Notes: a model not told the origin generated them from the letters alone. Shown: positions 5,959 through 37,800, counted from the first letter of the stretch. The stretch is DNA of 42,301 bases from Klebsormidium nitens (GCA_000708835.1 DF237650.1:1-42301), one strand, 5' to 3'. Made by a program: numbers and translations.

Positions 5959-8900
5959 ATGAAGACGATTGGAAACGCTGCTGGGGTCGATGACGAAGGT
6001 GCAGACAAGTACAACAAAAAGTCAAGAACAGCAAGGTGAGCCCCACTTCTCAACTCTTCGCTTTGCTGTCAAATGATTTCATGTGATGTTGTGCTTCTTG
6101 TTTTGGAGATTGATCACGCCAATTATCGATTTGGCCATGTTTTCTGTGCTTTAAGCTGATTCTTTGCCTTGACTATGCAGCCAATTACCTCAGCTCTCCT
6201 TCTATGGATCTGGGAAGTTCCTGCGTATGTTGTGCGTGTACGCCGTCTACCAGTACCTGGAGACCACAAGCGCATCCTTGATCCAGTTTGTCTTCTGGTG
6301 CCTGCTCGGGTCTGCCCTGGCGTTCCTTGTCATTCAGCAGCCATGGAAGGGCAGACCACTGCCATCTAGCCAGGTGAGCGGAAGTCGGAGCACTTGCTGT
6401 CAATATGGGATCACATCTTGAATGTTGGCGCTTTTCTGTCCACTGCCATTTTCCAATCAATCAAACTTGATTTGATTGGAAACACCATAGATGACCCGCT
6501 CTGACGACGTCTTGCTTTGATTTGCAGTGGGCACCTACAGTGATCAATGGGTTTGTTCTAGCGATGTCTCTGCTGCTGTGGGGCCATGCGCTGCGGACGT
6601 CAGGCGTCATAAGGTATTCTTGACCATCTGATGATCAGAGCTTAGGAAAGCCTCCGATAGATTATGACAAGCAACCATACGATTTTTTCCTGGATCAATT
6701 ATCCTAGACAGCAGACCTTCTCATTCAGTGTTGTCCCTGCAGTCGACTCCCTGACGCTCATATTCTGGGCACATGACATTGAATGATTGCAAAGCTTGAC
6801 AAGATTTAAGCGAATCGCACCCACTCTTCAAAGAACGGGCTTCGCGCGTGGGGTTGCAATTAGGTTGCTGACTGTACAACCTGTGCCGAAGGATCTCTAC
6901 TTATTGCCTCACCATCATCATCTGTTGCTGTACAGGACTATAGTTGCAGAATATGCTGGAGTTGCTGTTGGAGGCATCTCCATGCTGTTCCTGAGCAAAA
7001 GGGGAAACCGTGCACGGAAGGTGCGTGCTTCATTGCTGTGGCTGAGGGTCAAGATACTAGGTTGCAGCAAGTGTAGTTGTGTCGCGTACAGAAAAGCACG
7101 CAATCTATTGCATGGTGGAGAGAATCCTTTGGATGTTGGGGGACAGTCAGATACTGATATTGCGCATTCTTGTCTATCTTTCTTTTCAACAGATCCAGGG
7201 CCTCCTCAGCCTGGCCGCGGCTTTCTTCATGTTCTCACGGGGGTGGTCGTCGGCTACATCCTCGCCCTTCTTGAAGCTTCGCCAGCTCGTGAACAGCGAT
7301 ATGCAACCCGCCACCAGCGACTCAGCGGACGCTGGACAAGTCTCTATGCTGGTTCCCGTGGCAGCTGGCCTCATGGCTGCTGCGCGGAGGCTGCTGGCAC
7401 GGCGGGTAGCTCTGAAGGTGCTGCCTCTTCCGTACAAGCCATTTGCTGCACTGTTGAGGTTGCATCTTGCTTCTTATGCCTGTCAGAGGAATTGCAAGAG
7501 GGGCTCGTGGATCTTGTGTTTAGAATTCTACCCTGCACGAGTTGCGTAAGGATGCGGCCCAGGCATCACGCGCTATTTTACGCTAGTTGCCTGACATAAA
7601 ATTTATTGTTCTCTGTGCAGACGCAGAGCAAGAAGCGGATGCAAGCGATCACTGTGATCTCTGCAGCTCTCTTCATGGCACCGATGGCGTTCTTCGAGTA
7701 TCTTAGCCTGGTAAGCAAGCGGGCCGTTTTTTTTTGGTCTTTTTGCCTAGAAGGATGTGCAGTTGGAGACGCCTTCTTTCTTGTGACTTCGTTACTGAAA
7801 GATTTTCAAAGCAATATGGACCTGAATCGAATGAGCAAAAGGCACTCAAAAGTTTCCTATTTCGTGCTTCGTGCAGGGGAACTCCGAGGGACAACCGTAC
7901 GCAGGATCAGTCATTGGTGTGCACTTGGCCTTCATTGTCTTCGGTATCGTGCTCCACTTTTACGTGGAGAGCTTTGGGGAGGACAGGTAGGCTCCAACTT
8001 CAATTTTGAATTCGTTCCCCCTGGCTGTGTGATATATCAAATAAGCAGTATGCTTACAACTTGTGGAAGGCGATATGTGTCCGTCAGACCTTCTCCTCTG
8101 GTGGTTGCCACGAAACTGAGGCGTGTTTCCGCCGCTTCCTCTTTCGTTTTCCACGTTCTGGTCTTCTTCAGACACACAAATCTGGGTCTTGCTTTGCAGG
8201 CTTAACATCAACTCTTCCTCCCCAATGAGCGTGGCATTTACGCTTGGCTCTGTAGCGGCAGTCGAGCTGTTCAACAAGGGCGACTTCTCTGTGTTGGGGT
8301 TTGCACTGTGCTCCTCAGTGCTGGCGCTTGGTGAGTATCTTCCAAAGACTTTTTCTGCCAGGTCTTGCCAACCAGATTCTTGCATGAAATATGACATCAA
8401 CCGCGTCCTTCACCGCCGATCTGAAGCATAGAACACTTTACAGAGTCGTTTGTCTTTCTATCTTCAGAATGTTGCCGGTCGAGCTCGACTGTGTAAGTCG
8501 ACCTTCTCTAGGTTACTGAGACGTTTGTCCTTTCGCCAGGGGTTCACTTGTCGGGCTCAGTCGAGATATCCAGGAGGGAGGCTGCAGCGATTGGTCTGGT
8601 GCCGGACGACAAGGAGAAGCAGAGGAGGGGGGCGACCGCCCTGCTCCCTGTAAGCAGGCAATCCTTCAATTCTGTGCTTGTACCTTCAGTTTCGTTTCTG
8701 AGTGTAAGGCAACCTCTATTTGTTGCTTGTTCTTTTGGTCGAAGTTGAGCGGAGGCCGCAGTGATGAGAACCGGGTGCTCCTCGTGCAGGGCCCCGTGGC
8801 GCATCTGTGGGCGGACCAGAAGTCGAGAAAGATAGCAAGTGCGTAAGAAAAGTCTCATGTCATCGAAAGTCGCTGTGTGCTGGAAGCTGTGCTGAATTGT

Positions 8901-11900
8901 GCAAAAGATACTCAGTGTCGCTTCCATCTAATTTTCAAGGTCGAACGATCCGGGTCAGCCAGCCTAAGAGGGCTGAACGCAGCTTTGCTTGGAATTTTGG
9001 GAGGAACCGTGAAGCATCCTGTAATAGGCACGGCGAGTCAGTCGTCCCGAACTGGAATCAGCCATCTAATCGCGACAGGCACCACGGTTCCTCGTTTTCT
9101 GAACTTCCACTGCCTCGCTGCTGATGATGAGTAGCTCATGGAGAAGAGGACGCAAATCAGTGTAGGCTTTTGCATCGAAGATGTTCTTGTCTGGTTGTCT
9201 ACTCTAAAGCTGCGGTCTGATCGTCCCTGTCTGTGGTCTCCCCTGCGCAGGTTTTCTCCTCATAAACACCATCTTCATGGTCGTGGAGTTCGTCTACGGA
9301 TTCTTCAGCAACAGGTGAGGCTCCACATGATACTCCTGCTCTTGCACGTTCTATAGATCTCATGACTGCCCATCCTCAAGGCAACGTGCCCTTGGCCCTC
9401 GGCCCTTGGTTTGGTCGGGTCCTTGATAGTGCTTTTGGAAAGACTCTGATCGTTCCCCTGATCTGAGATTATATCTGAGTGCTTTTTTCCGGAGCTAACA
9501 GTCCTCTGCAGTCAGTTTTGTTGCGAACAGGAAATGTTGAAGCTGAACTGAGCTACTGTTTCCCACTTCCCGCAGCTTGGGACTCATTTCCGACGCCTGC
9601 CACATGCTCTTTGATTGCGCTGCGCTTGCAATCGGTCTGTACGCCTCCTACATCGCCCGGCTGCCGTCAACAGCCAAGTACCCCTATGGGTGAGCCCACC
9701 CGCCTTGTCCCTGCTGTTTGCGATGGTGCACATGCTACACAGGTGCCGTTACATTATTCGCCCTCTCTCTTAGCGGTGTTGGACAGAACTTTATGATAAC
9801 GACAGAACTTTTTGATAACGCCTCTCAGTTTTGAGCGCTGCACCTTTCTTTTGAAGATTGTTTGAGTGGCTGTGTAGCTTGTCGACTTTCTCACGCTCCT
9901 TCCTTTGAATGAAAATCTACGTGCAACCATTTGATCCGACACTGTGCTTGTCAAATTCGTTCTGGCTCGCAAGGCGCTTGTTTTATCTCCCTGCGCTTAC
10001 AGCAGTTCACCTTTTTGCCGTATGCAGGTACGGGCGGTACGAGGTGCTGTCAGGATACGTGAACGCCATCTTCCTGGTGTTTGTGGCGACGTTGATCATC
10101 CTGGAGTCCATCGAGCGTGTCCTGGAGCCGCCCGACATTTCCACCGACAAGCTGATGCTCGTCTCGGTCGGCGGCTTTTTGGTCAACATGATCGGCTTGC
10201 TCTTCTTCCACGAGGCGCACATGCACTCGCACGGCCACGACTGCGGAGGGGGGCATTCACACAGCCACGGTGGGCATTCACACGGCCACGATCATTCGCA
10301 CCAGCACGATCACGAGCACGGGCATGCGCACGAGGGACATGCGCACAGTCACGAGCACGGGGAGACGTGCAGCGGGGGGCATTCACACCACGATCACGAT
10401 CATGGCCACAAGCACGACCACGAGCACGGAGCCCATTTACACCATGATCATGACCATGACGGTGGGCATGCACACAACAGAAGCGAGCATTCCCACGATC
10501 ACACACATGCCCACGAGCACAAGCATTTACACGAGCACGGGCATGCCCACGAGCACGAACATTCGAACCCAAAACACGAGCATTCACACCATGAGCACGA
10601 GCACTCCCCCAGCCCTGGCGCGCACCAGCACAGCCCGAGCTGCGATCACGGTCACAGTCACGACCATCGCCACAGCCACGATCACGCTCACGGCCACACT
10701 GAGGGGGCTGCTGCGCAAGACGGGGAGAACGGGCACGTTCAAGTGCATGGGCATGAGCAGCAGCCGGGCACGCCGGAGAGTCGGTGGAGCGAATCGAGCC
10801 TTGCTCAGGGGGGAGGAACGGCGAAGGGGGACAGCCACGGGCACGCCCATGGCGACGAGGAGTTCCAGATCAAGAGCCGGGTGGGGCGGCACGCGCACGG
10901 TCACGAGGAGCGGAGCGCGTCCCCGCAGGAGCCCAGTTCGCATTTACACCACCACGTGAAGCTGGAGGAGCCTGTTCACACCCACAGCCATGCCCATCAC
11001 GGGCACTCGCACGAGGACCACAACATGCGGGGGATCTTCTTGCACGTGTTGGCGGACACGCTGGGGAGCGTCGGGGTGATCATCTCCACGGCGCTTATCC
11101 AGTACTGCGGGTGGGTGCTGGCGGACCCGGTGTGCAGCATCTTCATCAGCCTGCTCATCGTGAGCAGCGTCATCCCGCTGCTGCAGACCACAGGGGAGCT
11201 GCTGCTGCAGCGCGTGCCGGCCAGCCTCGAGCGCGACGTGCAGACGCACCTCGGCACGGTGAGCAACGTCTTCCTAGCCGTCGGGGAAGTCTCTGTCCGT
11301 AGGTTGAGAGTGAGTCAAGCGGAGATGATTGAAGGCGCAGGGTCAGAAGCAGCAGCGCAGCCGCAAGGTCAAGCTGGAGGTCGATTTGCGGTCTTGTCCG
11401 TGGTTTACTTATCAGGTGTGCTGAACTCCGATCCGGATTGAGGCTTTCGAATCTTTCGGTGGCACGCGCTGCTCGCGTTGGCTTCGCTGGCTCGCAAGTT
11501 GCGCACGGTGGCAGTTTTTGCCCAGATCGACTCACTTTTCGTGCTTGTACAGTATCTGGCGATTGATTCCTAGCGAATAATTCAATGGTCTGTCTAACGT
11601 CCCAATGAAGCTGGGTTCGAGATTGTTCCTGACACTCGCTTAGCTGTTCTGGCATCTGCAAGAACCTGACATCTTTGGCGATCGTCCTCCAGGTGGACGA
11701 CATGGAGGGCGTGCTAAGTTGTCGGAAGGCCCACTTCTGGAGCTTCACCCCCAAGATGACGGTGGGCAGCCTGTGCGTCAGGGTCACGCAGCGGGTGAAC
11801 AAGCAGGATATCAGGTTGCGCATCGCCAACCTCTTCAAGTCAGCGGGCATCAGCCATCTGACAGTGGAGGTGAGGTTGGACTTGCGCCTTCTTGCTGGAA

Positions 11901-11952: not shown

Positions 11953-13374
11953 GATTGGAGAAGCGGAGTAAAGTCAAGACCAGGCTGGGCGTGGCGTTGC
12001 TTTTATGGAGCGATTGTGGCTCAGACACATTGTCGCTGCGGTGAATGTGACGAAGGTTCTTCCGAATGCAGATTGAGGACGATTCGGCGACGGATGGCTT
12101 GTATGGGGCATACAGCCCGTCAATACGAAGCCCCAAGACGCGTTTCATTTGGGACCCCCCCACCGGACCCAACACGCCTCGAAGCGGGTAGTTAGAAGAA
12201 GTTTCCGTGCACCCAGTCGTTTGCCTGAGGGCTTATTTTGTTCACCTGTCCGAAGCTGCGCACTAAAAATGCTGTTGCTTGAGAGTCCTTGTCCTCACAT
12301 GGTCCGCTTCTCATCGAAGCAAAGCCACTTGCTTTCTTATTTTCATGTCTGATTTTCATGCACTAGACTTGGGCTCGTACTTGGGCTGATTTTCAAATGG
12401 ACTTTGCTGACTTCTATCACCGTTACACCGCTCTGGCCTACATCCCAGGATACTTGCTGATTTACCTAGAGCATGTCAGAACTGTGTGGTAGAGCTAGTG
12501 CAGCTGCTAATATTGCAGACCAGGCGCCTCATGCCAGCTTATGCGCACACTGCTTTTACAGTGACGGTGACAGGTTTGACTTGCTACTAAGCAGGCAGAT
12601 TGCATTCGATGGCTTTGCGGCCCGGCGGCATGATTGAGTTGATTCAATTCGATTTGATTCGATCCATGGCCGTGATCATGAATCCATGCAGTCACCTTCA
12701 ATGCTCACACACCGTCTACAAATCTGCATGGCTCTAGCTATCTCTTAAGAGCATGGAGTGTCGATCCTTGTAACAATCATGGCCGCGGGCCGCTGCCGTC
12801 GACTTAGTGCAAGTGCGCAGAATCCACGAGGCGTAGATCGTGGTCAATAGATCTGCACCGTTGTTCATTAACCCGCGGCAGATGCATGCAATCGACCATG
12901 CGCGCGCAGCTTTAAGGGGCCCGCGTATGGTACAGAAATTTTCATGGTGAGAGTTACATATGCTCCAAAGTCGATTGCAAAACCGATCCGATCAACACTT
13001 AATCCTGGTGCGTGCATGCATGCAATCATGGAAGTTGATGCTCATTATGTCATGCATGTGCCGCGCACATGTGTCACTGGCCCGCGCGTAACAATGGCAT
13101 CCGACAGAACCGTCGATCAGTGGCATGTACATGTACTCCATTGTACGTCGTCGTGCAACACCGAGCTGCAGTGCAGGAACGGGGATTGAGCTCTAGCCGC
13201 CCCATGCAAGGCTCTGATAAAAAACGTGGCATGCAGCCATCAAGGATAATTTAGCAACGCGCAGTGATTCTAATGCAGACAGTCCTGCATCGCATGGCAA
13301 TCCCTCTTTCGAGTTGACGTCGATTGTTTTGAATGCGGGGCCGTAAGAAGAGAACTCGTCAAAGTCAATCATGT

Positions 13375-16300
13375 CTATCTTTTCAAAAAAAGATTCTCGT
13401 CCTGTAATTTATCGTACAAATGTTCAACGAACTCAGCATAGCCGTTGTAAAACTTCGTCGGCAAGGAAGGCCCGTCCGGTATGGACCATTCCGACGCTTG
13501 CGACCACCGGGGATGGGGAACGTCCGGATTCACCTAGCAAAGGAGAACAATTCCGCATGGGTTCCAAATGTTTGCCCGTTTTTGTGCAAGTGGAAGGCAA
13601 GCTTTCACGAAGTCGGGCTGGTGGCTCCAACGGGGCAACTTATGGCCGCAAGCAGCTCGACAGTGAGCAGTCAGGAAGAACCAAAGCGCAAATGGCATTG
13701 AGATGAAAGGCAAAGGCAACACGTGTTGACCAGAGTCCCGCAAACTCGTAAACGCCCCGCAAATTGAATCGCGCCGCAACGGCGGGCTTCAAAGGACAGT
13801 CTGTAATATCCAACCAAAACGGATTGTCGGCAAGAAAAGCTTTCCCTCAAGCATTTCGAACCCCACGTTGCTCGGAACAGTCTTTTGAAATATTCTAAAA
13901 AGCAAATGCGCGGTCTCAGAACGACTCTCACGTTCGCCCAGAAGCCGTACTCCACCCCGTCCGCCTTCTCCCAAAAGGTGCGCGGCCGCTCCGCAGTGTA
14001 GCTGATGCGCACGATCGTCTTGATCGACTTGAAGCCGTACTTCCAGGGGATCACCAGCCGCAGAGGGGCGCCATTCTGCAGCAAAACCGCCGGTGCTTGA
14101 AGTGTGCGGAGACGGAATACATTACCAGACCGCAGACAGCATGTAAGTAGTAGGTGGCCGAAGAATGCTTTGGAGGTTCTCAAGGAGTGGCAAAACTGAA
14201 GAAACAGTCCCTCTTAAGGAGGCAGGGACAAACCCATTGACTGCTCCACGGTCTGCTTGTTTGGATTAGGCCAGATACTTCAGTTGTCCAAGCCCTGCTA
14301 ATCCTGACGACCTTGGATTTGCGTCCTGTAAACTGAGCCCTTCTTGCAGGGGCCTAGCTACTACATCATCTACCGTACACTGTGCATGTTTAGAGTAGAG
14401 CGGCTCTCACTGAGGACTCATGAGAGCCGGGTGGATATTTCATACTCAAGACAGCGATTGAAAGCAGCCCATGTTTGATTGTCATCAGAGTATTAGGAGA
14501 CGTCTCTGGACTCTCATGAAGAAACCGCTGAGAAATGCGCACGGCCACGAAGGCGAGCCTCGCGCAGAAGACCGTCAAAAATCAATGCTTCGAGGAAAAA
14601 GCATATAATTTTCGCACACTCAGATACATCAAACTTTCAATCCCAGATGATCTTGAGACTGCGTCTTGACTTCCATTTTGCACAAACTGCCCACCTGCGG
14701 CGGCAGCGGCTGCTGGAAGATCCCGACAGCCACGAACGGAGCGTTTTAACCCTGGGTTTACGCTTTCAGTCAATCATTACTCATAATGTATGGCGCTTTA
14801 CCCTCTTCTCGAATCCAGAGATACGCCATTTTTTTAAAACACCAACCTGCGGCGGCAGCGGCTGCTGGAAGATGCCCACGGCCACGAACGCGAGCTCGTT
14901 GCGCGCCTCCGCGAGCGTGAGCGCCTCCACGTACGGCCACTGGTACGCGCTGAACGCGCTGGCGGTCGCTCGGACGGCATACGATTCGAAGCGGACGTAC
15001 TGAGCGTCCGCGGAGGGGGGGACCATGTCCAGCAACCGAGAGAGGGGAAAGCCGATCCACGGGACGACCATGCTCCACGCCTCGACGCACCTGGGGGGAA
15101 GAGAAAAATGAAGGCGATGAGAGAACGGCCCGTAAATAGGCAGACAAACTGCTCCGCAAGGTGCTCGCTCGAAAAAAATTCGGTTTCGATTGCATAAAAG
15201 GGAGTAAAGTCAGGAGACTCGAGCGAGTGGGCGGTTCCGAGTTGGATACGGGGGACAATGCAAACCGGTATAATGGCCGTGAACCGCGGATCCCTCGATC
15301 GTTCTGACGTTTGGAGTGATCCGACGCACCAGGCGGGGAGCGGCACATGCGAGAGGAAGAACGCTCGTGCTCTGTAGCGACTCTCAGAATCAAGAGAGGT
15401 GAAGCTGGTCCGGCACGGCGCCCCCTCGGAGCCGAGGAAACCGTCGCAAGCACACTTTTTCTTCTTCGCACCCCCGGGAACTCTATGATTTGCAAGTGAT
15501 TCAAGCAACGCGGGCAGATCCAGCAAGGATCTTACGAGAACTGTTACAATCTTGGCTGCGTTAAGGCCCTGCAGCTAGCATAAGCGCGAGTTGGGCGACC
15601 TAATTGCTGAGGTGCCAGCCCATTTCCGCCCCCGCTGGCATCTTCCGGACACAAAGAACACCTGAGACGAACAGTGAATCGTGGGCTCCGAACCCTTCGT
15701 TGAGATCTGCCATTTTTCAAACCCAGGAAGTTTGAAAAACCAGGCCCCGAGCCCGACCTGTGCCTGTAGAGGCGCTCCTCTAGCGGGCCGGTGTTTGCGA
15801 GCATGGTGGCGAGGTTCACGTCCAAGGAGGCCCCGTCCTGCGTCAGCCCGTCGAAGCGCACGGTCCAGGCAGGGTTGGGCGTCATCCCGATCGCGGCTGC
15901 ACGAGGCCCGATGAACTTAGCTACCTGCGGGGAAACGAACTGTGTTCGAAACCCCTTTGTCGAACAGTGTTTTTGAGGCACTGCTATACGGTACAAACCT
16001 TTCAGGAGCATGCATGGGGAGAGGTAAGGTTAGGGGGTCGATCCTGGGTCATACTTTGGAAGAGAGACGAAGCTGGAATGTGACATCATGCGGGCCAGAG
16101 CTTCTGGAAGTTGCGGTGACAGCTCGAAGGCGACCAGTTGGGAAGCGGGGGCGGCGAACATCGACCTGCGAACTGGCCCAAGTTCGTAGCCTACTTGCAG
16201 GCGCCGCGGACCAGCAAGATGAAGCCACAAGTCAAAATCCGGGAAAATGCCAACGATGGCATATTTGCTGAACCTCGAAACAGACACACTTAGAAAACTG

Positions 16301-17549
16301 CGTGCTTCAAAGGGGGTTTGATCAAAATGAAGAGACCTAAGCTTCAATCCCCCAATGATTTGATGTGAGTTGAGATTGACATTGATGTGAATCAAGTCAA
16401 AAACAAACATAGCACAAGCTGATTCATTACTGAAAAAAGGCCGTCTGTCCAGAGCGACTGGCGCACAAAACTCGTTTGGGAAAAGTCCTTCCCTCCACTC
16501 CTCAGCTGTTCTCAGACTGCACCATCCGCTTTAGAACTCAGAACCAGTACACTTTGGGAGATGCAAGTTCGACATCTTCCGTGGTTGGGTTGCTGTGTAA
16601 AAGCCTACAGGAGTCTACGTAGTTTGCTGACAGATTTTACCAAGGAAGTGGGTTTTTAAGTGCAAGGAAGTGACTCACCCTCTTGTCTGTCGAGAACTCG
16701 AAGAAGTTGTTGTAATTGAAAACAGTCTCTGTGGCCGTGATGTCCCTGTCATCTACTGTGTAGTGCAGGTTTCGGGGGACCCCTTGAAAGAGCGAATCTG
16801 GCAGCCGGGCGCTGAGGTTGAGGCGGGACGTCGCCAGATGCCCTGGTGAAGGAAAGGTCGAGAACGAAGTATTAGATCAGCAAGTGCAGAACCCTGTGTC
16901 CTAGTGGCGAGCAGCAGACACGTTCCTACCAGTAGAACCTTGAAAGGAAAGACGTTCCAGTCTTTCCATGTGAGTGGTCAGGCGTTGCATCAATCTCCTG
17001 CACATTGGACCACTGACTCACAAAATCTACAGCGCGACACTTGGAAACAGATTGGGCGCCTTCTCTACAAAAACTCGGCAAAGTGTTCTTGAAAACCGTT
17101 ATCTCCTTCAGGATTGCTAAACGCTCAGCACAGTCGACTCACCGGGTATGCTGTCATGAAACCCCGACTCGGCTGACACTGCCAGATATAAGAATACTCC
17201 CCCTCCCACAACCCCACATAATAGCACCACCGATGTTACCACAAATCCCGCCAGGTAAAGCAGTTCCCTCCAGGCAGACCGCCTGTGAAACTCCCCCCTC
17301 AACAGGGCCTCGTTGTCCCCATCCTCGGACACACTGGCATCAGGGGCCTTGTTGGGGCCGTTGTCGACTTCAAGAGGCAGTCTGTGAGAAGGGGCAGACG
17401 TCCCAACACCATCTGTGGAGCACAGAATTCAACACTCGAAAGATCCTGAGAAGGGGTGTGTTCCAATTGAGCAATTGAGGCATCTTGAAGTGTGCTGGGA
17501 GGGGCGGGGCTCATTAATACGTACATGATCGTTCGCAAACTGCCAGCAT
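13375..17549 (-). CDS. msrP: MsrP/YedY-family molybdopterin protein-methionine-sulfoxide reductase catalytic subunit, spliced, with N-terminal membrane anchor
   Basis: Exons (high to low) 17412-17143, 16842-16679, 15924-15758, 15090-14847, 14075-13932, 13533-13375; GT-AG with consistent phases. The first exon is uncertain (17549-17525 proposed; an ATG|GT at 18147-18145 is also possible). Motifs [54 protein letters not shown] and [22 protein letters not shown] closely match E. coli YedY as recalled. Confidence 0.93.
14535..14890 (-). repeat. Degenerate tandem copies of the 3' end of an MsrP exon, including its splice donor
   Basis: Exon segment 14847-14890 is repeated at 14695-14738 (41/44 identical, followed by its own GT donor). 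A shorter, more degenerate copy lies at 14535-14558. Confidence 0.85.
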
Positions 17550-18631
17550 CTTGTACACCTAAGAGATACTATGATGAACTCCATTGGCAGAAGAACGGTA
17601 GTGGTGGTCTGCCAACGACGAGTCACGATTGGCTGGCGCACAGTGATTATGCTTAAATCTAATTGAGTGGTCCTGACCATGGTGAATGACCGCACCACTG
17701 GTGCACCCTTGAATGTATGTTTATCCTATGCAGCCGATTCCACCGTATCCTCTTCCCCGCACTTTCAAGTTTTGCAAGTTATTCAGCATAGCAAATTTAT
17801 CGGGCTTTGCGACCAGTCAAGCGCGCGCATTACTGCCACCACATTGGTGGCATCCCCAGAACAGAATGAAGAAGCAGAGAAACCCACTTGCCTTCAACGT
17901 CGCTGCTTTCTTCTCTTGCCGTGCGCACATAGCTGCCCATGTTCCTCTCAATTCAATCAGCTAGGTCGCCCCTTGACAAAAATCAGCACTTTGCAGGCAC
18001 CAAAGGACTAAACGAACTCCCAGTATCACACATGCAAGGCTGAGCTGTCCTCAGTTGACCAAAATCAGAAAAGCACTGCTTATCCATCTTCTTCCTCAGG
18101 CCTGGCCTGCTTTGTACAGTTGAACTTCGACCGCCATTCCTCACCATGGCGCGCTTCACGAGGAACAATGTGAGCAGCTTGCAAAATCGTTAGGTTGTCG
18201 AATCTTCAGGCTGAGTAGAGCACGGTTTTCGGGTTCTGCAGCGCCGCCACCTGCGCCCGAAAATTGCGATCAACCAAGATCCTGGCGACCATCTAGAAGT
18301 CCGTGCCCCTCTAGTAACCTGCCCCTGCAACGCGAGCTTTTTAAGCGTTCCATGAGAGGGTCATTATCCAGAATCCACCTCATGCACACGTGGTCCACGT
18401 GGCGATTGCTTCCCCGTGGCTGCACACTCGCCAGCTGGGGGGTCACGTACGCCCCATTTGCAGGGCGTCAATGGCTTCCTGTGAGGTTCTTCTCATTCTT
18501 CCTGAGATCAGATATTTCCTTCTGCTCGTTTCCCAGGTGCCCCCCGCTGGCGGGCCGCCATGGCGCTTGCCAGGCACCGGAGGCATGGCTGACGTTGACA
18601 GTGACGTCAAGGGCGTAATTTGAGCCCCAGA

Positions 18632-34826: not shown

Positions 34827-37800
34827 ATGACGAAGTCGGTGCTCTGTATCTGCACGTCGCACGAGCAGCTCGGCTCCAGCGGGAGGAAGACGGGGCTATG
34901 GTGAGCGCGCGCGCGCAATGTCAGAAACAGAACTAGCAGTAGATTCCTTAAGCTCTGAAGCCGGACCTTCTTTGCTTCTGTACACAATAGTCAGAGGTTC
35001 TAGAGATGTCTAAGGGCATATTTGTGCTTCTTCGCATCCTTCCCCTCCTGTTCGTCTTTGTCCTCTGTGTCAGCTTGACGAGTCAAGATGCGAACGAACG
35101 AAGTCAAGCCGGTTGCGCACAGAGAGGATGCAAGAACCTCGATTGCGAGCAGAGTTAGATTTCCTGGCCTGGCTCGTTTGTCTTTGGCCCTGAAACTGCC
35201 ATGCCCTCGTGCACTGTCCTCCAAATTCCCACTAGGGCCAGTCATCTAAGAGCATAAACCGGCCTGCATCCGTAGAGATCAAGCCACCCCCTGCATTCCG
35301 TCGAGCATCAAGACTTGTACGAATGTTATGAGAGAAAATTTCAAAGCCAAGACGTCTTCGTGCATGCAGGCTGGAGGAGCTTGCGGCGCCCTACTTCAAG
35401 TTCAAGGAGGCCGGCTACAAGGTCAAGATCACCAGCGTGAAGGGGGGGAAGGTCCCGCTGGGTAAGACTCAGGTTCATACCCCCCCTGAATTAATGTTTC
35501 GCACAAAGAGGCCGAGGAACTCTTTGTCCCATTATGCAGCTTCCCGAGAATCGAGGCAGGATGTTGTCGACAAGCGAGTTCTTTTGAGACCAGAAAAAGT
35601 GGTTGAAAGAGGAGCCATTCTGGACTCAGGTTGAAAATCACGCAAGTGTTCAGGATAGGGTGGATTGTGTAGCCCCGAACGAAAGACAAGTGGATTGAAT
35701 CAGGGACTGCTCTCTGGCTGGGGATTGGACTCAAGCGGGATTGTTTGTTTTCAACTAGAGAGGGTCAAGTCGGAGAGATCGAACCTCACCGCGTGCAAGA
35801 TCAATGGTTCTTCCCGTCTTCTTGTGCGCAGACCCCCGGAGCCTTGAGGAAGACAGGAAGGGGCCCCACAGCAAGAAGTTCCTCGAGAGCGGTGAGGGGG
35901 CCCTCCACGATGACGTCAGCACTGGCTGCATGCTGACGCAAATCTGAATACCAGAGCGGAACCTTTCTATAATACGAAGCAGCTCGGATGGACTATCTTT
36001 CGTCGCTCCGAATTCGAGCTGCCAGTCTCCAGTTGGAAAGGAACTCAACTCTAGAAACGGCGGTCATATGCAAGACTCAGTGGGATTATAGAAAGCGAAT
36101 GAGAAGATTGCAGATCGACGATCTCGTGCCGCGCAGATGAGACCAAGAACCTGCTCAACGACACCGAGTCGGTCAGAGACGTCAAGGACGTATACGACAT
36201 CCTCTACCTGCCGGGTATGGGTACACTCTCCCCTTCTTTTAGACTGACGATTTCTGCATTTCAGACCAGAAAACACCCTCTCTTTGCCACAACCTAAGCG
36301 CGCTGCGAATGACAGAATGACCTGACAAGTCGAATCTGACAGCTTGCTTCCAAACGGTTCAAACCAAGGACACTGGTTCTCTTTCTCCCCGCCCAACATC
36401 CTACTCTTCTTTTTCCCTTCTTCTCTTTTCCCCCCCTCATCTCAGCAGTCAAAGATATGACGCCACCGGAAACTTGCAAAGGCTCATTCTCTGCTAGTCA
36501 ACACTGCAGACTTGTAGGCCGTCAGACGGAACTTGTGGCTTCACACGATTGTGCGAAGACGCTGACCTGCCCGCCCAATCGAAAATTCCAATCCCTAGGC
36601 TGTCACAGCCGCCTTCGTACTCTTCAAAAGCTCGGTGTCAGATCGAGAGGTCAAAACGCCGGCGAGTCTGACCGCCCGGTTGGCCATCTCTACGCTGTCA
36701 CCAGCGCCTTCTTTACCCTCGGAGAACTGAAATTCAGGGCAATCAGTGTCAGAGAACCGGCCATTCCTGACCGCCCGGTTGGCCGTTTTCCAGGCGGGCA
36801 CGGCACCATGTGGGACTTCACGACGGAGCCGGTGAAGGAGACGGTGAAGCGGCACTACAAGGCGGGCAAGGTGCTGTCGTCCGTCTGCCACGGCCCGGCG
36901 GGCTTCATCAAGCCGGAGGACGACAAGGGGGAGCCCATCGTCAAGGGCAAGAAGGTGGGCGCGCGCGCGCGTCTCGGGAGGCGTTCGGAGTGAATTGCGC
37001 AGATCGGTATTGGGTTCAGTGTGGATCGGTCTCTGTATTTCATCCGTACGTCCGAATCTTGCAAGCACGGAGTCGTGGTGAGTCCTGGAGGATATTCCAG
37101 TACTCAGAAGCGTTTTGCAGTTTTTTCTGTCGCTGGAGGTGTGGAATCAGAGCTGGCGTGGGGGAGGCTTCGCGGCGTGCATTCAATGTCGAGAATCCTT
37201 GAGAGAAGATCCACTGGGTTATATCTCAGCAGACTGTGGCAGGAGGCTTTCGTTTGCAAGTGCACGGTTCCCTTCTCGACACTCTGAACGTGCGGTTCCT
37301 CGCAAACAAGAAGAAAACTTGCGGGTGATGATCTCAGATTTGCCACGCGTTGTGACTAAGCGGTTGAAAAACAATCAAACAGACAAACAGGGCGCCTTGT
37401 AGGATCCAGCCCTAGGAAATCCCACGAGCCCCAAGCCTCTGCAACGCGAAATCTTTAAACTATCCCAATCGCCTCGCAGGTGACCAGCTTCAGCAACTCG
37501 GAGGAGAAGTCGATTGGGGACATCGACGCGGTGCCGTTCCTGCTAGAGGACGCGCTCAAGGAGAGGGGCGCGCTCTACCAAAAGGGGCCCGACTGGGTGA
37601 GCCGAAAGCGTCAAAATCCGGTTCCTCTTAACGGGTTTGGGTAACGGGCAGTCGGATCAGGTTACTTCTGTCTAGGCCGCTTCAGCCCGCCACCATAAGA
37701 CTTGGAACAACCCTTAACGAACAGATTACAAGAATGAATTCCTTGGTCAAGCGGCGGCTTGAAAATCACTGATAGGGACCGTATGGGTTCGCGGCTACAC

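Follow-up and report, generated by a model that had tools for sequence, protein, structure and literature searches.

A spliced nuclear gene of Klebsormidium nitens encodes an MsrP (YedY)-family molybdoenzyme with a predicted membrane anchor

Bacterial MsrP (YedY), a molybdenum cofactor (Moco)-dependent reductase of protein methionine sulfoxide (MetO), is exported by the twin-arginine translocation (Tat) pathway and receives its electrons from the membrane haem protein MsrQ. While MsrA and MsrB depend on thioredoxin-type reductants and are stereospecific, MsrP uses Moco together with membrane-delivered electrons and reduces both diastereomers, and the MsrP proteins of Escherichia coli and Rhodobacter sphaeroides are 50% identical to each other (10.1101/243626). 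Eukaryotic molybdenum enzymes are counted as five, MsrP not being among them (PMC10637980). Mo-dependent MetO reductases are treated elsewhere as a bacterial speciality (PMC7402097), and none was found in 683 fungal genomes (10.1101/2021.02.26.433065). One review asks whether there is an MsrPQ-like system in oxidising compartments of eukaryotes, for example the endoplasmic reticulum or lysosomes (PMC6316033). Here we analysed a stretch of 42,301 nucleotides from the alga Klebsormidium nitens (GCA_000708835.1 DF237650.1:1-42301; this whole stretch is called the window below), in which an earlier note, made from the sequence alone, had placed an intron-containing MsrP gene at 13375-17549, remarking that MsrP is missing from the usual plant molybdoenzyme list. 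The remark agrees with our full-text literature search, which left out most subscription journals: no paper was found on a eukaryotic MsrP/YedY, none that lists MsrP among the eukaryotic molybdoenzymes and none that describes it in algae. The enzyme family itself is known; its eukaryotic, membrane-anchored form without MsrQ and its relatives fused to cytochrome b561 appear to be undescribed. The best explanation of the locus overall, and one that we consider probable, is a functional nuclear gene for an enzyme, with its catalysis predicted, that is anchored by a single membrane pass and that belongs, within the sulfite-oxidase family, to the MsrP/YedY branch.

The gene lies on the minus strand and comprises seven coding exons and six introns, with a coding sequence of 1197 nt for 398 amino acids. 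Coding exon 1 (17940-17892) runs from Met1 (ATG at 17940-17938) to the first base of codon 17 and is followed by intron 1 (17891-17413), which is 479 nt long and of the non-canonical GC-AG type (GCAAGT...CACAG). Exon 2 (17412-17143) encodes an acidic N-terminal tail, the sequence RRSAWR, a hydrophobic helix and AVSA|E. Exon 3 (16842-16679) covers a linker with a sequon at Asn115 as well as the first part of the catalytic domain (YNNFFEF), including Phe154, and exon 4 (15924-15758) continues through ...EERLYRHR and stops within the Arg217 codon. The codon of the Mo-ligand Cys218 (15089-15087) is carried by exon 5 (15090-14847), the motifs of the pterin region by exon 6 (14075-13932), and the C-terminal part, ending in ...NGY, by exon 7 (13533-13375) with its stop codon at 13377-13375. 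Minus-frame translation of 13300-17700 showed exons 2-7 to be phase-consistent, stop-free and split by five GT-AG introns, with intron 4 dividing the Arg217 codon (AG|G) just before the Cys218 codon. This translation, together with the colinearity of the exons on the NF003767 profile described below, confirms the six exons of the earlier note, which lie between 17412 and 13375. An in-frame TGA lies 15 nt 5' of the start ATG, and the 5' untranslated region extends further upstream; the 3' untranslated region (13374-13230) has a length of at least 145 nt, with spliced contigs reaching 13230-13290.

Parts of the stretch occur in 20 public sequencing runs; four of these, each from a different study, supplied contigs for comparison with positions 13200-17800 of the window. 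In each of the four runs the contigs skip exactly 13534-13931, 14076-14846, 15091-15757, 15925-16678 and 16843-17142, which are the five predicted introns; the skipped segments have CT..AC ends on the plus strand, equal to GT..AG on the gene strand. Given these exactly joined exon forms, the runs were identified as RNA. No sequence differences were found between the spliced contigs of the four runs and the window, the position of Phe154 included. Upstream of exon 2 (17412/17414), the contigs of the four runs go over into sequence that has its only match in the window at 17894-17923, and the first coding exon is therefore 17940-17892. Five introns are thus seen in the contigs as exact joints, and intron 1 as a matching loose end. 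The resulting model is letter for letter the public 398-residue protein GAQ90908.1 / A0A1Y1IRZ5, "oxidoreductase [Klebsormidium nitens]". The K. nitens gene is transcribed and correctly spliced, and it is already in the public annotation, but under the uninformative name "oxidoreductase".

The upper boundary at 17549 given in the earlier note falls outside the mRNA. A start ATG at this position, with a 25-nt mini-exon, was rejected since the RNA contigs never reach 17549; intron 1 contains at 17549-17523 a decoy ATG-plus-GT that misled the sequence-only reading. Within intron 5, an unused duplicate of the 3' end and splice donor of exon 5 was observed (14690-14738, minus strand, 49 nt, 92% identical), together with a second, weaker copy at 14527-14558 (84% identical). 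Neither of these partial copies, which correspond to the last ~30-50 nt of exon 5, is present in the spliced contigs.

An ortholog in a related alga was found on Logan contig L001 (contigs L001-L003 derive from SRR14092358, SRR14092359 and SRR14092360, three runs of one series), reached via a fragment 77% identical to exon 5. It has exons 2-7 with the same boundaries; the exon DNA is 71-85% identical and the introns are unalignable. The two proteins are 74% identical over 376 aligned codons, and the ratio of nonsynonymous to synonymous substitution rates (dN/dS, Nei-Gojobori) is 0.15 overall and 0.13 for the catalytic exons, at a dS of ~1.0. The MsrP gene is under clear purifying selection. 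The earlier description of an intact, intron-bearing MsrP/YedY-type gene in a eukaryotic nuclear genome is borne out, and the gene, which is of bacterial type, is clearly domesticated, as shown by its six introns, its spliced RNA, the dN/dS of ~0.13 and the flanking eukaryotic genes.

The spliced protein scores 323.5 bits on NCBIfam NF003767, the MsrP equivalog model (curated equivalog cut-off, 207 bits), over profile positions 62-318 of 320. Translated separately, the exons are colinear and ungapped on the same profile, at positions 61-86, 95-133, 135-219, 220-267 and 268-318 of 320, and the scores on the SorA/SorT (sulfite dehydrogenase) models are far under the cut-offs of those models. Two exon pieces match Pfam PF00174, which is the sole Pfam match of the whole protein; the Pfam scan found no Mo-co dimerisation, cytochrome b5 or FAD domain. 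In an alignment with E. coli YedY (PDB 1XDQ), Cys218 falls on Cys102, and the column of this Mo ligand is invariant in 60 of 60 aligned sequences. Exon 5, which covers NF003767 135-219, aligns with 1XDQ residues 102-188 (E 3e-18), and exon 6 with residues 189-236. The motifs YRHR|CVEAWS, NGAPLRL and KYGFKSIK are all in the spliced protein, so that the Mo-ligating Cys, the two further motifs and the intron within the preceding Arg codon are present as the earlier note had reported them. When a column conserved in at least 95% of 83 bacterial MsrP sequences was taken as near-invariant, 63 of 68 such columns were kept in the K. nitens protein. The five changed columns are Y-to-F154, G-to-A273, Y-to-F291, G-to-Q292 and S-to-T318, and the changes to A273, F291, Q292 and T318 are frequent in the eukaryotic MsrP clade.

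The predicted structure points in the same direction. An AlphaFold2 model computed with a 60-sequence alignment has a mean predicted local distance difference test (pLDDT) score of 79, with values above 90 across most of the catalytic domain. Its top Foldseek matches are the YedY structures 1XDQ/1XDY (E 6e-30, target-normalised template modelling (TM) score 0.88, root-mean-square deviation 2.3-2.5 Å, 44-45% identity), while the comparison with sulfite oxidases and nitrate reductase (1OGP, 1SOX, 2BIH; 17-21% identity) and with sulfite dehydrogenases gives a TM score of only ~0.35. The K. nitens protein is predicted to take the YedY fold. By sequence, key residue and fold it is an MsrP-family enzyme, and neither a sulfite oxidase nor a nitrate reductase. 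We regard it as close to certain that the gene is a real and functional member of the MsrP family, its function being predicted.

Compared with the described enzymes, the K. nitens protein resembles E. coli MsrP (YedY, 1XDQ/1XDY) and R. sphaeroides MsrP in consisting of a single Moco domain of the sulfite-oxidase family without a dimerisation or haem domain. It differs from bacterial MsrP in that the gene is nuclear and has six spliceosomal introns, and in that an acidic tail and a single helix replace the Tat signal. With plant and animal sulfite oxidase and assimilatory nitrate reductase it shares the PF00174 Moco-binding fold and the Cys-ligated Mo centre, but it lacks their Mo-co dimerisation, b5 and FAD domains, in addition to the low TM score given above. 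With MsrA/MsrB it would have the presumed substrate, protein MetO, in common, whereas its fold and chemistry are unrelated to theirs.

The N-terminal layout is a 59-residue acidic tail, an arginine pair (RR, residues 60-61), one hydrophobic helix of ~30 residues (~67-95; placed at 51-86 in the AlphaFold2 model), AVSA|E, the linker with one conserved NLS (Asn-Leu-Ser) sequon at Asn115, and the Mo domain. The first 66 residues include 14 Asp/Glu, and residues 49-54 form the acidic-dileucine motif DNEALL. Between the K. nitens and L001 orthologs the tail diverges, except for APSHxLPLEVD, GDxEALL, RRSAWR and LYLAVSAE. NF003767 positions 1-61, the Tat signal region, have no match in the K. nitens protein, and its arginine pair, standing after a 59-residue acidic tail and before an anchor-like helix of ~30 residues, does not qualify as a Tat signal. 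According to hydropathy analysis, the single hydrophobic helix has the more positive flank on its N-terminal side, and this charge distribution favours a cytosolic N-terminus with the catalytic domain outside. The plan of tail, RR/basic residues and single anchor is common to the Pyramimonas and Neomeris-type short forms. When the N-terminal 130 residues were used for an Atlas search, only generic single-pass anchored proteins were returned. An extracytoplasmic location of K. nitens MsrP seems rather probable to us, and the predicted non-cytosolic side of the membrane would match the periplasm of bacterial MsrP.

Clues to the electron donor come from the domain architecture of the relatives. 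Many relatives in the clade carry a Notch-type (extracellular) LNR module directly before the Mo domain; in other relatives, DOMON and cytochrome b561 are joined to MsrP, in some of them together with two cytochrome b5 domains. Nine fusion proteins were recognised (P0286, which is Cymbomonas KAK3270999.1, P0308, P0397, P0047, P0066, P0036, P0159, P0046 and P0030), each a single polypeptide with DOMON and cytochrome b561, often LNR, and a C-terminal MsrP domain; P0030 has the two cytochrome b5 domains. In each of the nine, DOMON and the Mo domain are separated by six hydropathy peaks and so come to lie on one and the same side, the non-cytosolic one, and in the b5-containing fusion the b5 domains are within a predicted cytosolic loop. 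Judged by domain composition, the DOMON-b561-MsrP protein looks as if bacterial MsrQ plus MsrP had been replaced in eukaryotes by one chain. The literature search found no paper with DOMON, b561 and molybdopterin together. Like the eukaryote-type MsrP of Pyramimonas, Cymbomonas and Neomeris, the K. nitens protein belongs to the same clade and has a C-terminal MsrP domain, and it shares the cytosolic tail and anchor of the short forms. Unlike most eukaryote-type MsrP it is a minimal form, with no LNR, DOMON, b561 or b5 module found by Pfam next to PF00174.

In the bacterial control loci L029 and L044, msrQ is located directly downstream of msrP. Unlike these bacterial MsrPQ loci, K. nitens msrP has no adjacent msrQ: in the 42-kb window, to which the searches were confined, MsrQ queries gave nothing better than E ~1, and no DOMON/b561 gene was present. 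The expectation that the enzyme works with MsrQ, as stated in the earlier note for MsrP, is therefore not supported at this locus, where no MsrQ-like sequence occurs in the window and the relatives are fused to DOMON-cytochrome b561. CYBDOM and other cytochrome b561 carriers, which are fused to MsrP in clade members and functionally analogous to the di-haem MsrQ, are proposed as the electron feeder. By analogy with these fusions, K. nitens MsrP may be paired with such a carrier encoded elsewhere than in the MsrP gene or the window. We put the chance of a b561-type electron donor just short of even.

To place the protein among its relatives, exon 5 was used for a HMMER search, which gave 925 representative proteins, the best full-length ones being 45-50% identical to the spliced protein. 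A profile search whose alignment took in three alphaproteobacterial sequences returned overwhelmingly bacterial MsrP and was uninformative on eukaryotes. Eukaryotic matches included transcripts of Pyramimonas obovata, P. parkeae and P. sp. CCMP2087, the genome-encoded Cymbomonas tetramitiformis protein KAK3270999.1 ("cytochrome b561 domain-containing protein"), Neomeris dumetosa, a Neomeris-related EukProt transcript and further long proteins. The best 80 GTDB species-genome matches were mostly Alphaproteobacteria, with few Gammaproteobacteria and others, and no cyanobacterium was among them. In a tree of 111 rows, one branch with an SH-like approximate likelihood ratio test (SH-aLRT) support of 96 parts 88 bacterial rows from 23 eukaryote-type rows, the K. 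nitens protein included. A data set of 82 rows, extended by every near-full-length representative that ranked closest to the K. nitens exon, was analysed with IQ-TREE, and here the K. nitens protein, its ortholog and all eukaryote-type proteins (19-20 proteins besides the K. nitens pair) form one clade with an ultrafast bootstrap (UFBoot) of 99 and an SH-aLRT of 93. Beside this clade stand two bacterial-type sequences, and then an alphaproteobacterial group at 94/88. The K. nitens pair is on a long branch of ~0.5 substitutions per site, which calls for some caution.

The K. nitens protein belongs to a clade of eukaryotic (green-algal) MsrP that is monophyletic and has alphaproteobacteria as its nearest labelled bacterial relatives. 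Of the two routes of gain offered in the earlier note, a transfer private to Klebsormidium conflicts with this clade, which also contains the three Pyramimonas proteins, Cymbomonas, a Neomeris relative and the fusions, and an endosymbiotic, that is cyanobacterial, origin has no support from the best GTDB matches or from the nearest labelled bacteria, which are alphaproteobacterial. We think it very likely that K. nitens MsrP belongs to an old eukaryotic clade and is not a recent transfer. The data are most simply read as a single old acquisition, found in both Chlorophyta and Streptophyta, with many later losses, and eukaryote-to-eukaryote transfer may have been an alternative route. The MsrP domain of the Cymbomonas gene is intronless and has no intron positions to compare with those of K. 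nitens.

We propose the following working model. The bacterial Tat signal would have become a signal-anchor, either uncleaved or cleavable, leaving the N-terminus cytosolic while the catalytic domain faces outwards or into a lumen. The protein would be sorted within the endomembrane system (cell surface, endosome or vacuole) by its acidic tail, which bears the conserved [DE]xxxLL motif, and the Moco domain would reduce protein MetO, possibly also other S-/N-oxides, in an oxidising, thiol-poor compartment. The electrons would not come from MsrQ and would instead cross the membrane from a separately encoded haem protein of the cytochrome b561/DOMON type. For the enzymatic role, the location and the partner of K. 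nitens MsrP we infer this much from the evidence above, and protein MetO as the main substrate is slightly favoured. In a wider and more tentative form, with the balance somewhat against it, the model says that green algae, and probably other protists, have a sixth eukaryotic molybdoenzyme family, an extracytoplasmic MsrP in which DOMON-cytochrome b561 modules, either alone or together with cytochrome b5, take the place of MsrQ; these modules would be fused to MsrP in some lineages and a separate protein in Klebsormidium. If this is true, the cell surface or the endomembrane lumen would have a thiol-independent MetO repair, probably driven by ascorbate or NAD(P)H, and there would be a still undiscovered route carrying Moco or Moco-loaded protein across a eukaryotic membrane.

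Several points weigh against this model, concerning activity, location and ancestry. As regards activity, Phe154 (TTC, 16702-16700) occupies the position of the Tyr of NNFYEF, which is invariant in 83 of 83 bacterial MsrP and is retained in 19 of 20 eukaryote-type proteins and in the L001 ortholog; the replacement of Tyr by Phe154 could lower or alter activity. The same residue is the starting point of an alternative in which the fold is kept for another job, either the reduction of small S-/N-oxides such as dimethyl sulfoxide (DMSO), trimethylamine N-oxide (TMAO) and free MetO or redox sensing, the Tyr-to-Phe change marking an altered handling of substrate. The long branch of the K. nitens pair would fit such a change, and YedY was reportedly first characterised in vitro with small S-/N-oxides. 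The closest ortholog, however, does have the Tyr, most of the invariant columns are kept (63/68), the protein scores above the MsrP equivalog cut-off, and the gene is under strong purifying selection. We consider this other role unlikely, though it is the strongest of the competing explanations.

The location poses the main difficulty of the membrane-anchored model, in that an extracytoplasmic Mo enzyme made through Sec61 faces an unsolved cofactor-loading problem, and we know of no route for Moco into the secretory pathway. In addition, transmembrane segments were counted with a crude hydropathy scan, the partner and sidedness in K. nitens are carried over by analogy from its relatives, and RR, followed by a hydrophobic stretch and AVSA|E, is also reminiscent of a signal of the Tat type (thylakoid lumen). 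A second alternative is an MsrP of the thylakoid lumen with a bipartite presequence, whose second half would be a retained twin-arginine signal (RR60-61, the hydrophobic core and AVSA|E); the chloroplast Tat pathway (cpTat) would move the folded, Moco-loaded enzyme, which would then repair photo-oxidised lumenal proteins. Transport by Tat would solve the export of a cofactor-loaded protein, bacterial MsrP is an established Tat substrate (MsrPQ papers), and within exon 2 no parts are better conserved between the two orthologs than RRSAWR, the hydrophobic stretch and LYLAVSAE. However, the abundance of acidic residues (14 in the first 66) is unlike chloroplast transit peptides, and the hydrophobic segment of ~30 residues is anchor-like and exceeds typical Tat h-regions. 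The LNR and DOMON-b561 modules of the relatives are typical of the secretory pathway or the cell surface, and neither the best 80 GTDB matches nor the maximum-likelihood tree show any cyanobacterial affinity. To our knowledge, Moco is not known in plastids, which also counts against a lumenal enzyme. A thylakoid-lumen MsrP is therefore regarded as distinctly improbable, and the membrane-anchored enzyme with an extracytoplasmic Mo domain is preferred.

With regard to ancestry, most of the eukaryote-type sequences (Logan/ENA/JGI) were judged eukaryotic by their domain architecture, and the bacterial sampling consists of best matches only, so that the alphaproteobacterial neighbours need not be the donor lineage. 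A recent horizontal transfer of a bacterial gene that reached no lineage but Klebsormidium would agree with best full-length identities of merely 45-50%, with the many alphaproteobacterial top matches and with the patchy distribution across Viridiplantae. It is opposed by the grouping of the K. nitens protein with all other eukaryote-type MsrP (UFBoot 99 / SH-aLRT 93), by the six introns, by an N-terminal plan common to the Pyramimonas and Neomeris-type proteins, and by the ortholog in a second species at a dS of ~1, and we hold it to be very improbable. Finally, either a bacterial contaminant in the assembly or a pseudogene in decay, for which nothing more than the bacterial look of the domain speaks, has a practically negligible probability, since spliceosomal introns removed in RNA from four studies, the intact frame, the flanking CDF-transporter gene that is syntenic in a second alga and the purifying selection (dN/dS 0.13) together exclude these readings.

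The K. nitens gene and its algal relatives provide a concrete, expressed candidate for an MsrPQ-like system in eukaryotes. They open testable questions about extracytoplasmic protein repair in algae, about b561/DOMON proteins feeding a Mo centre and about Moco reaching a non-cytosolic compartment, and they offer a dated case in which the Tat signal of an enzyme from the bacterial periplasm seems to have become a membrane anchor in a eukaryote. Two limits apply: databases already contain the protein, with a generic name, and the family may reach no further than some algae, since it does not seem to figure in the usual lists of plant molybdoenzymes.

Next to the MsrP gene, an intron-poor open reading frame (ORF) of 510 amino acids (9909-11441, plus strand; Pfam Cation_efflux) encodes a CDF transporter. 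The pair of CDF transporter and MsrP genes is syntenic on contig L001, where the CDF gene is at ~6290-8480. JGI metagenome contigs of 42-51 kb carry the same exon-sized ORF of the MsrP gene as contigs L001-L003, called "YedY" by prokaryotic gene callers. Further along the window, an ORF of 178 amino acids (36457-36993, plus strand) gives a weak DJ-1/PfpI match below threshold (21.6 bits; cut-off, 26.6 bits) and is probably one exon of a larger gene.

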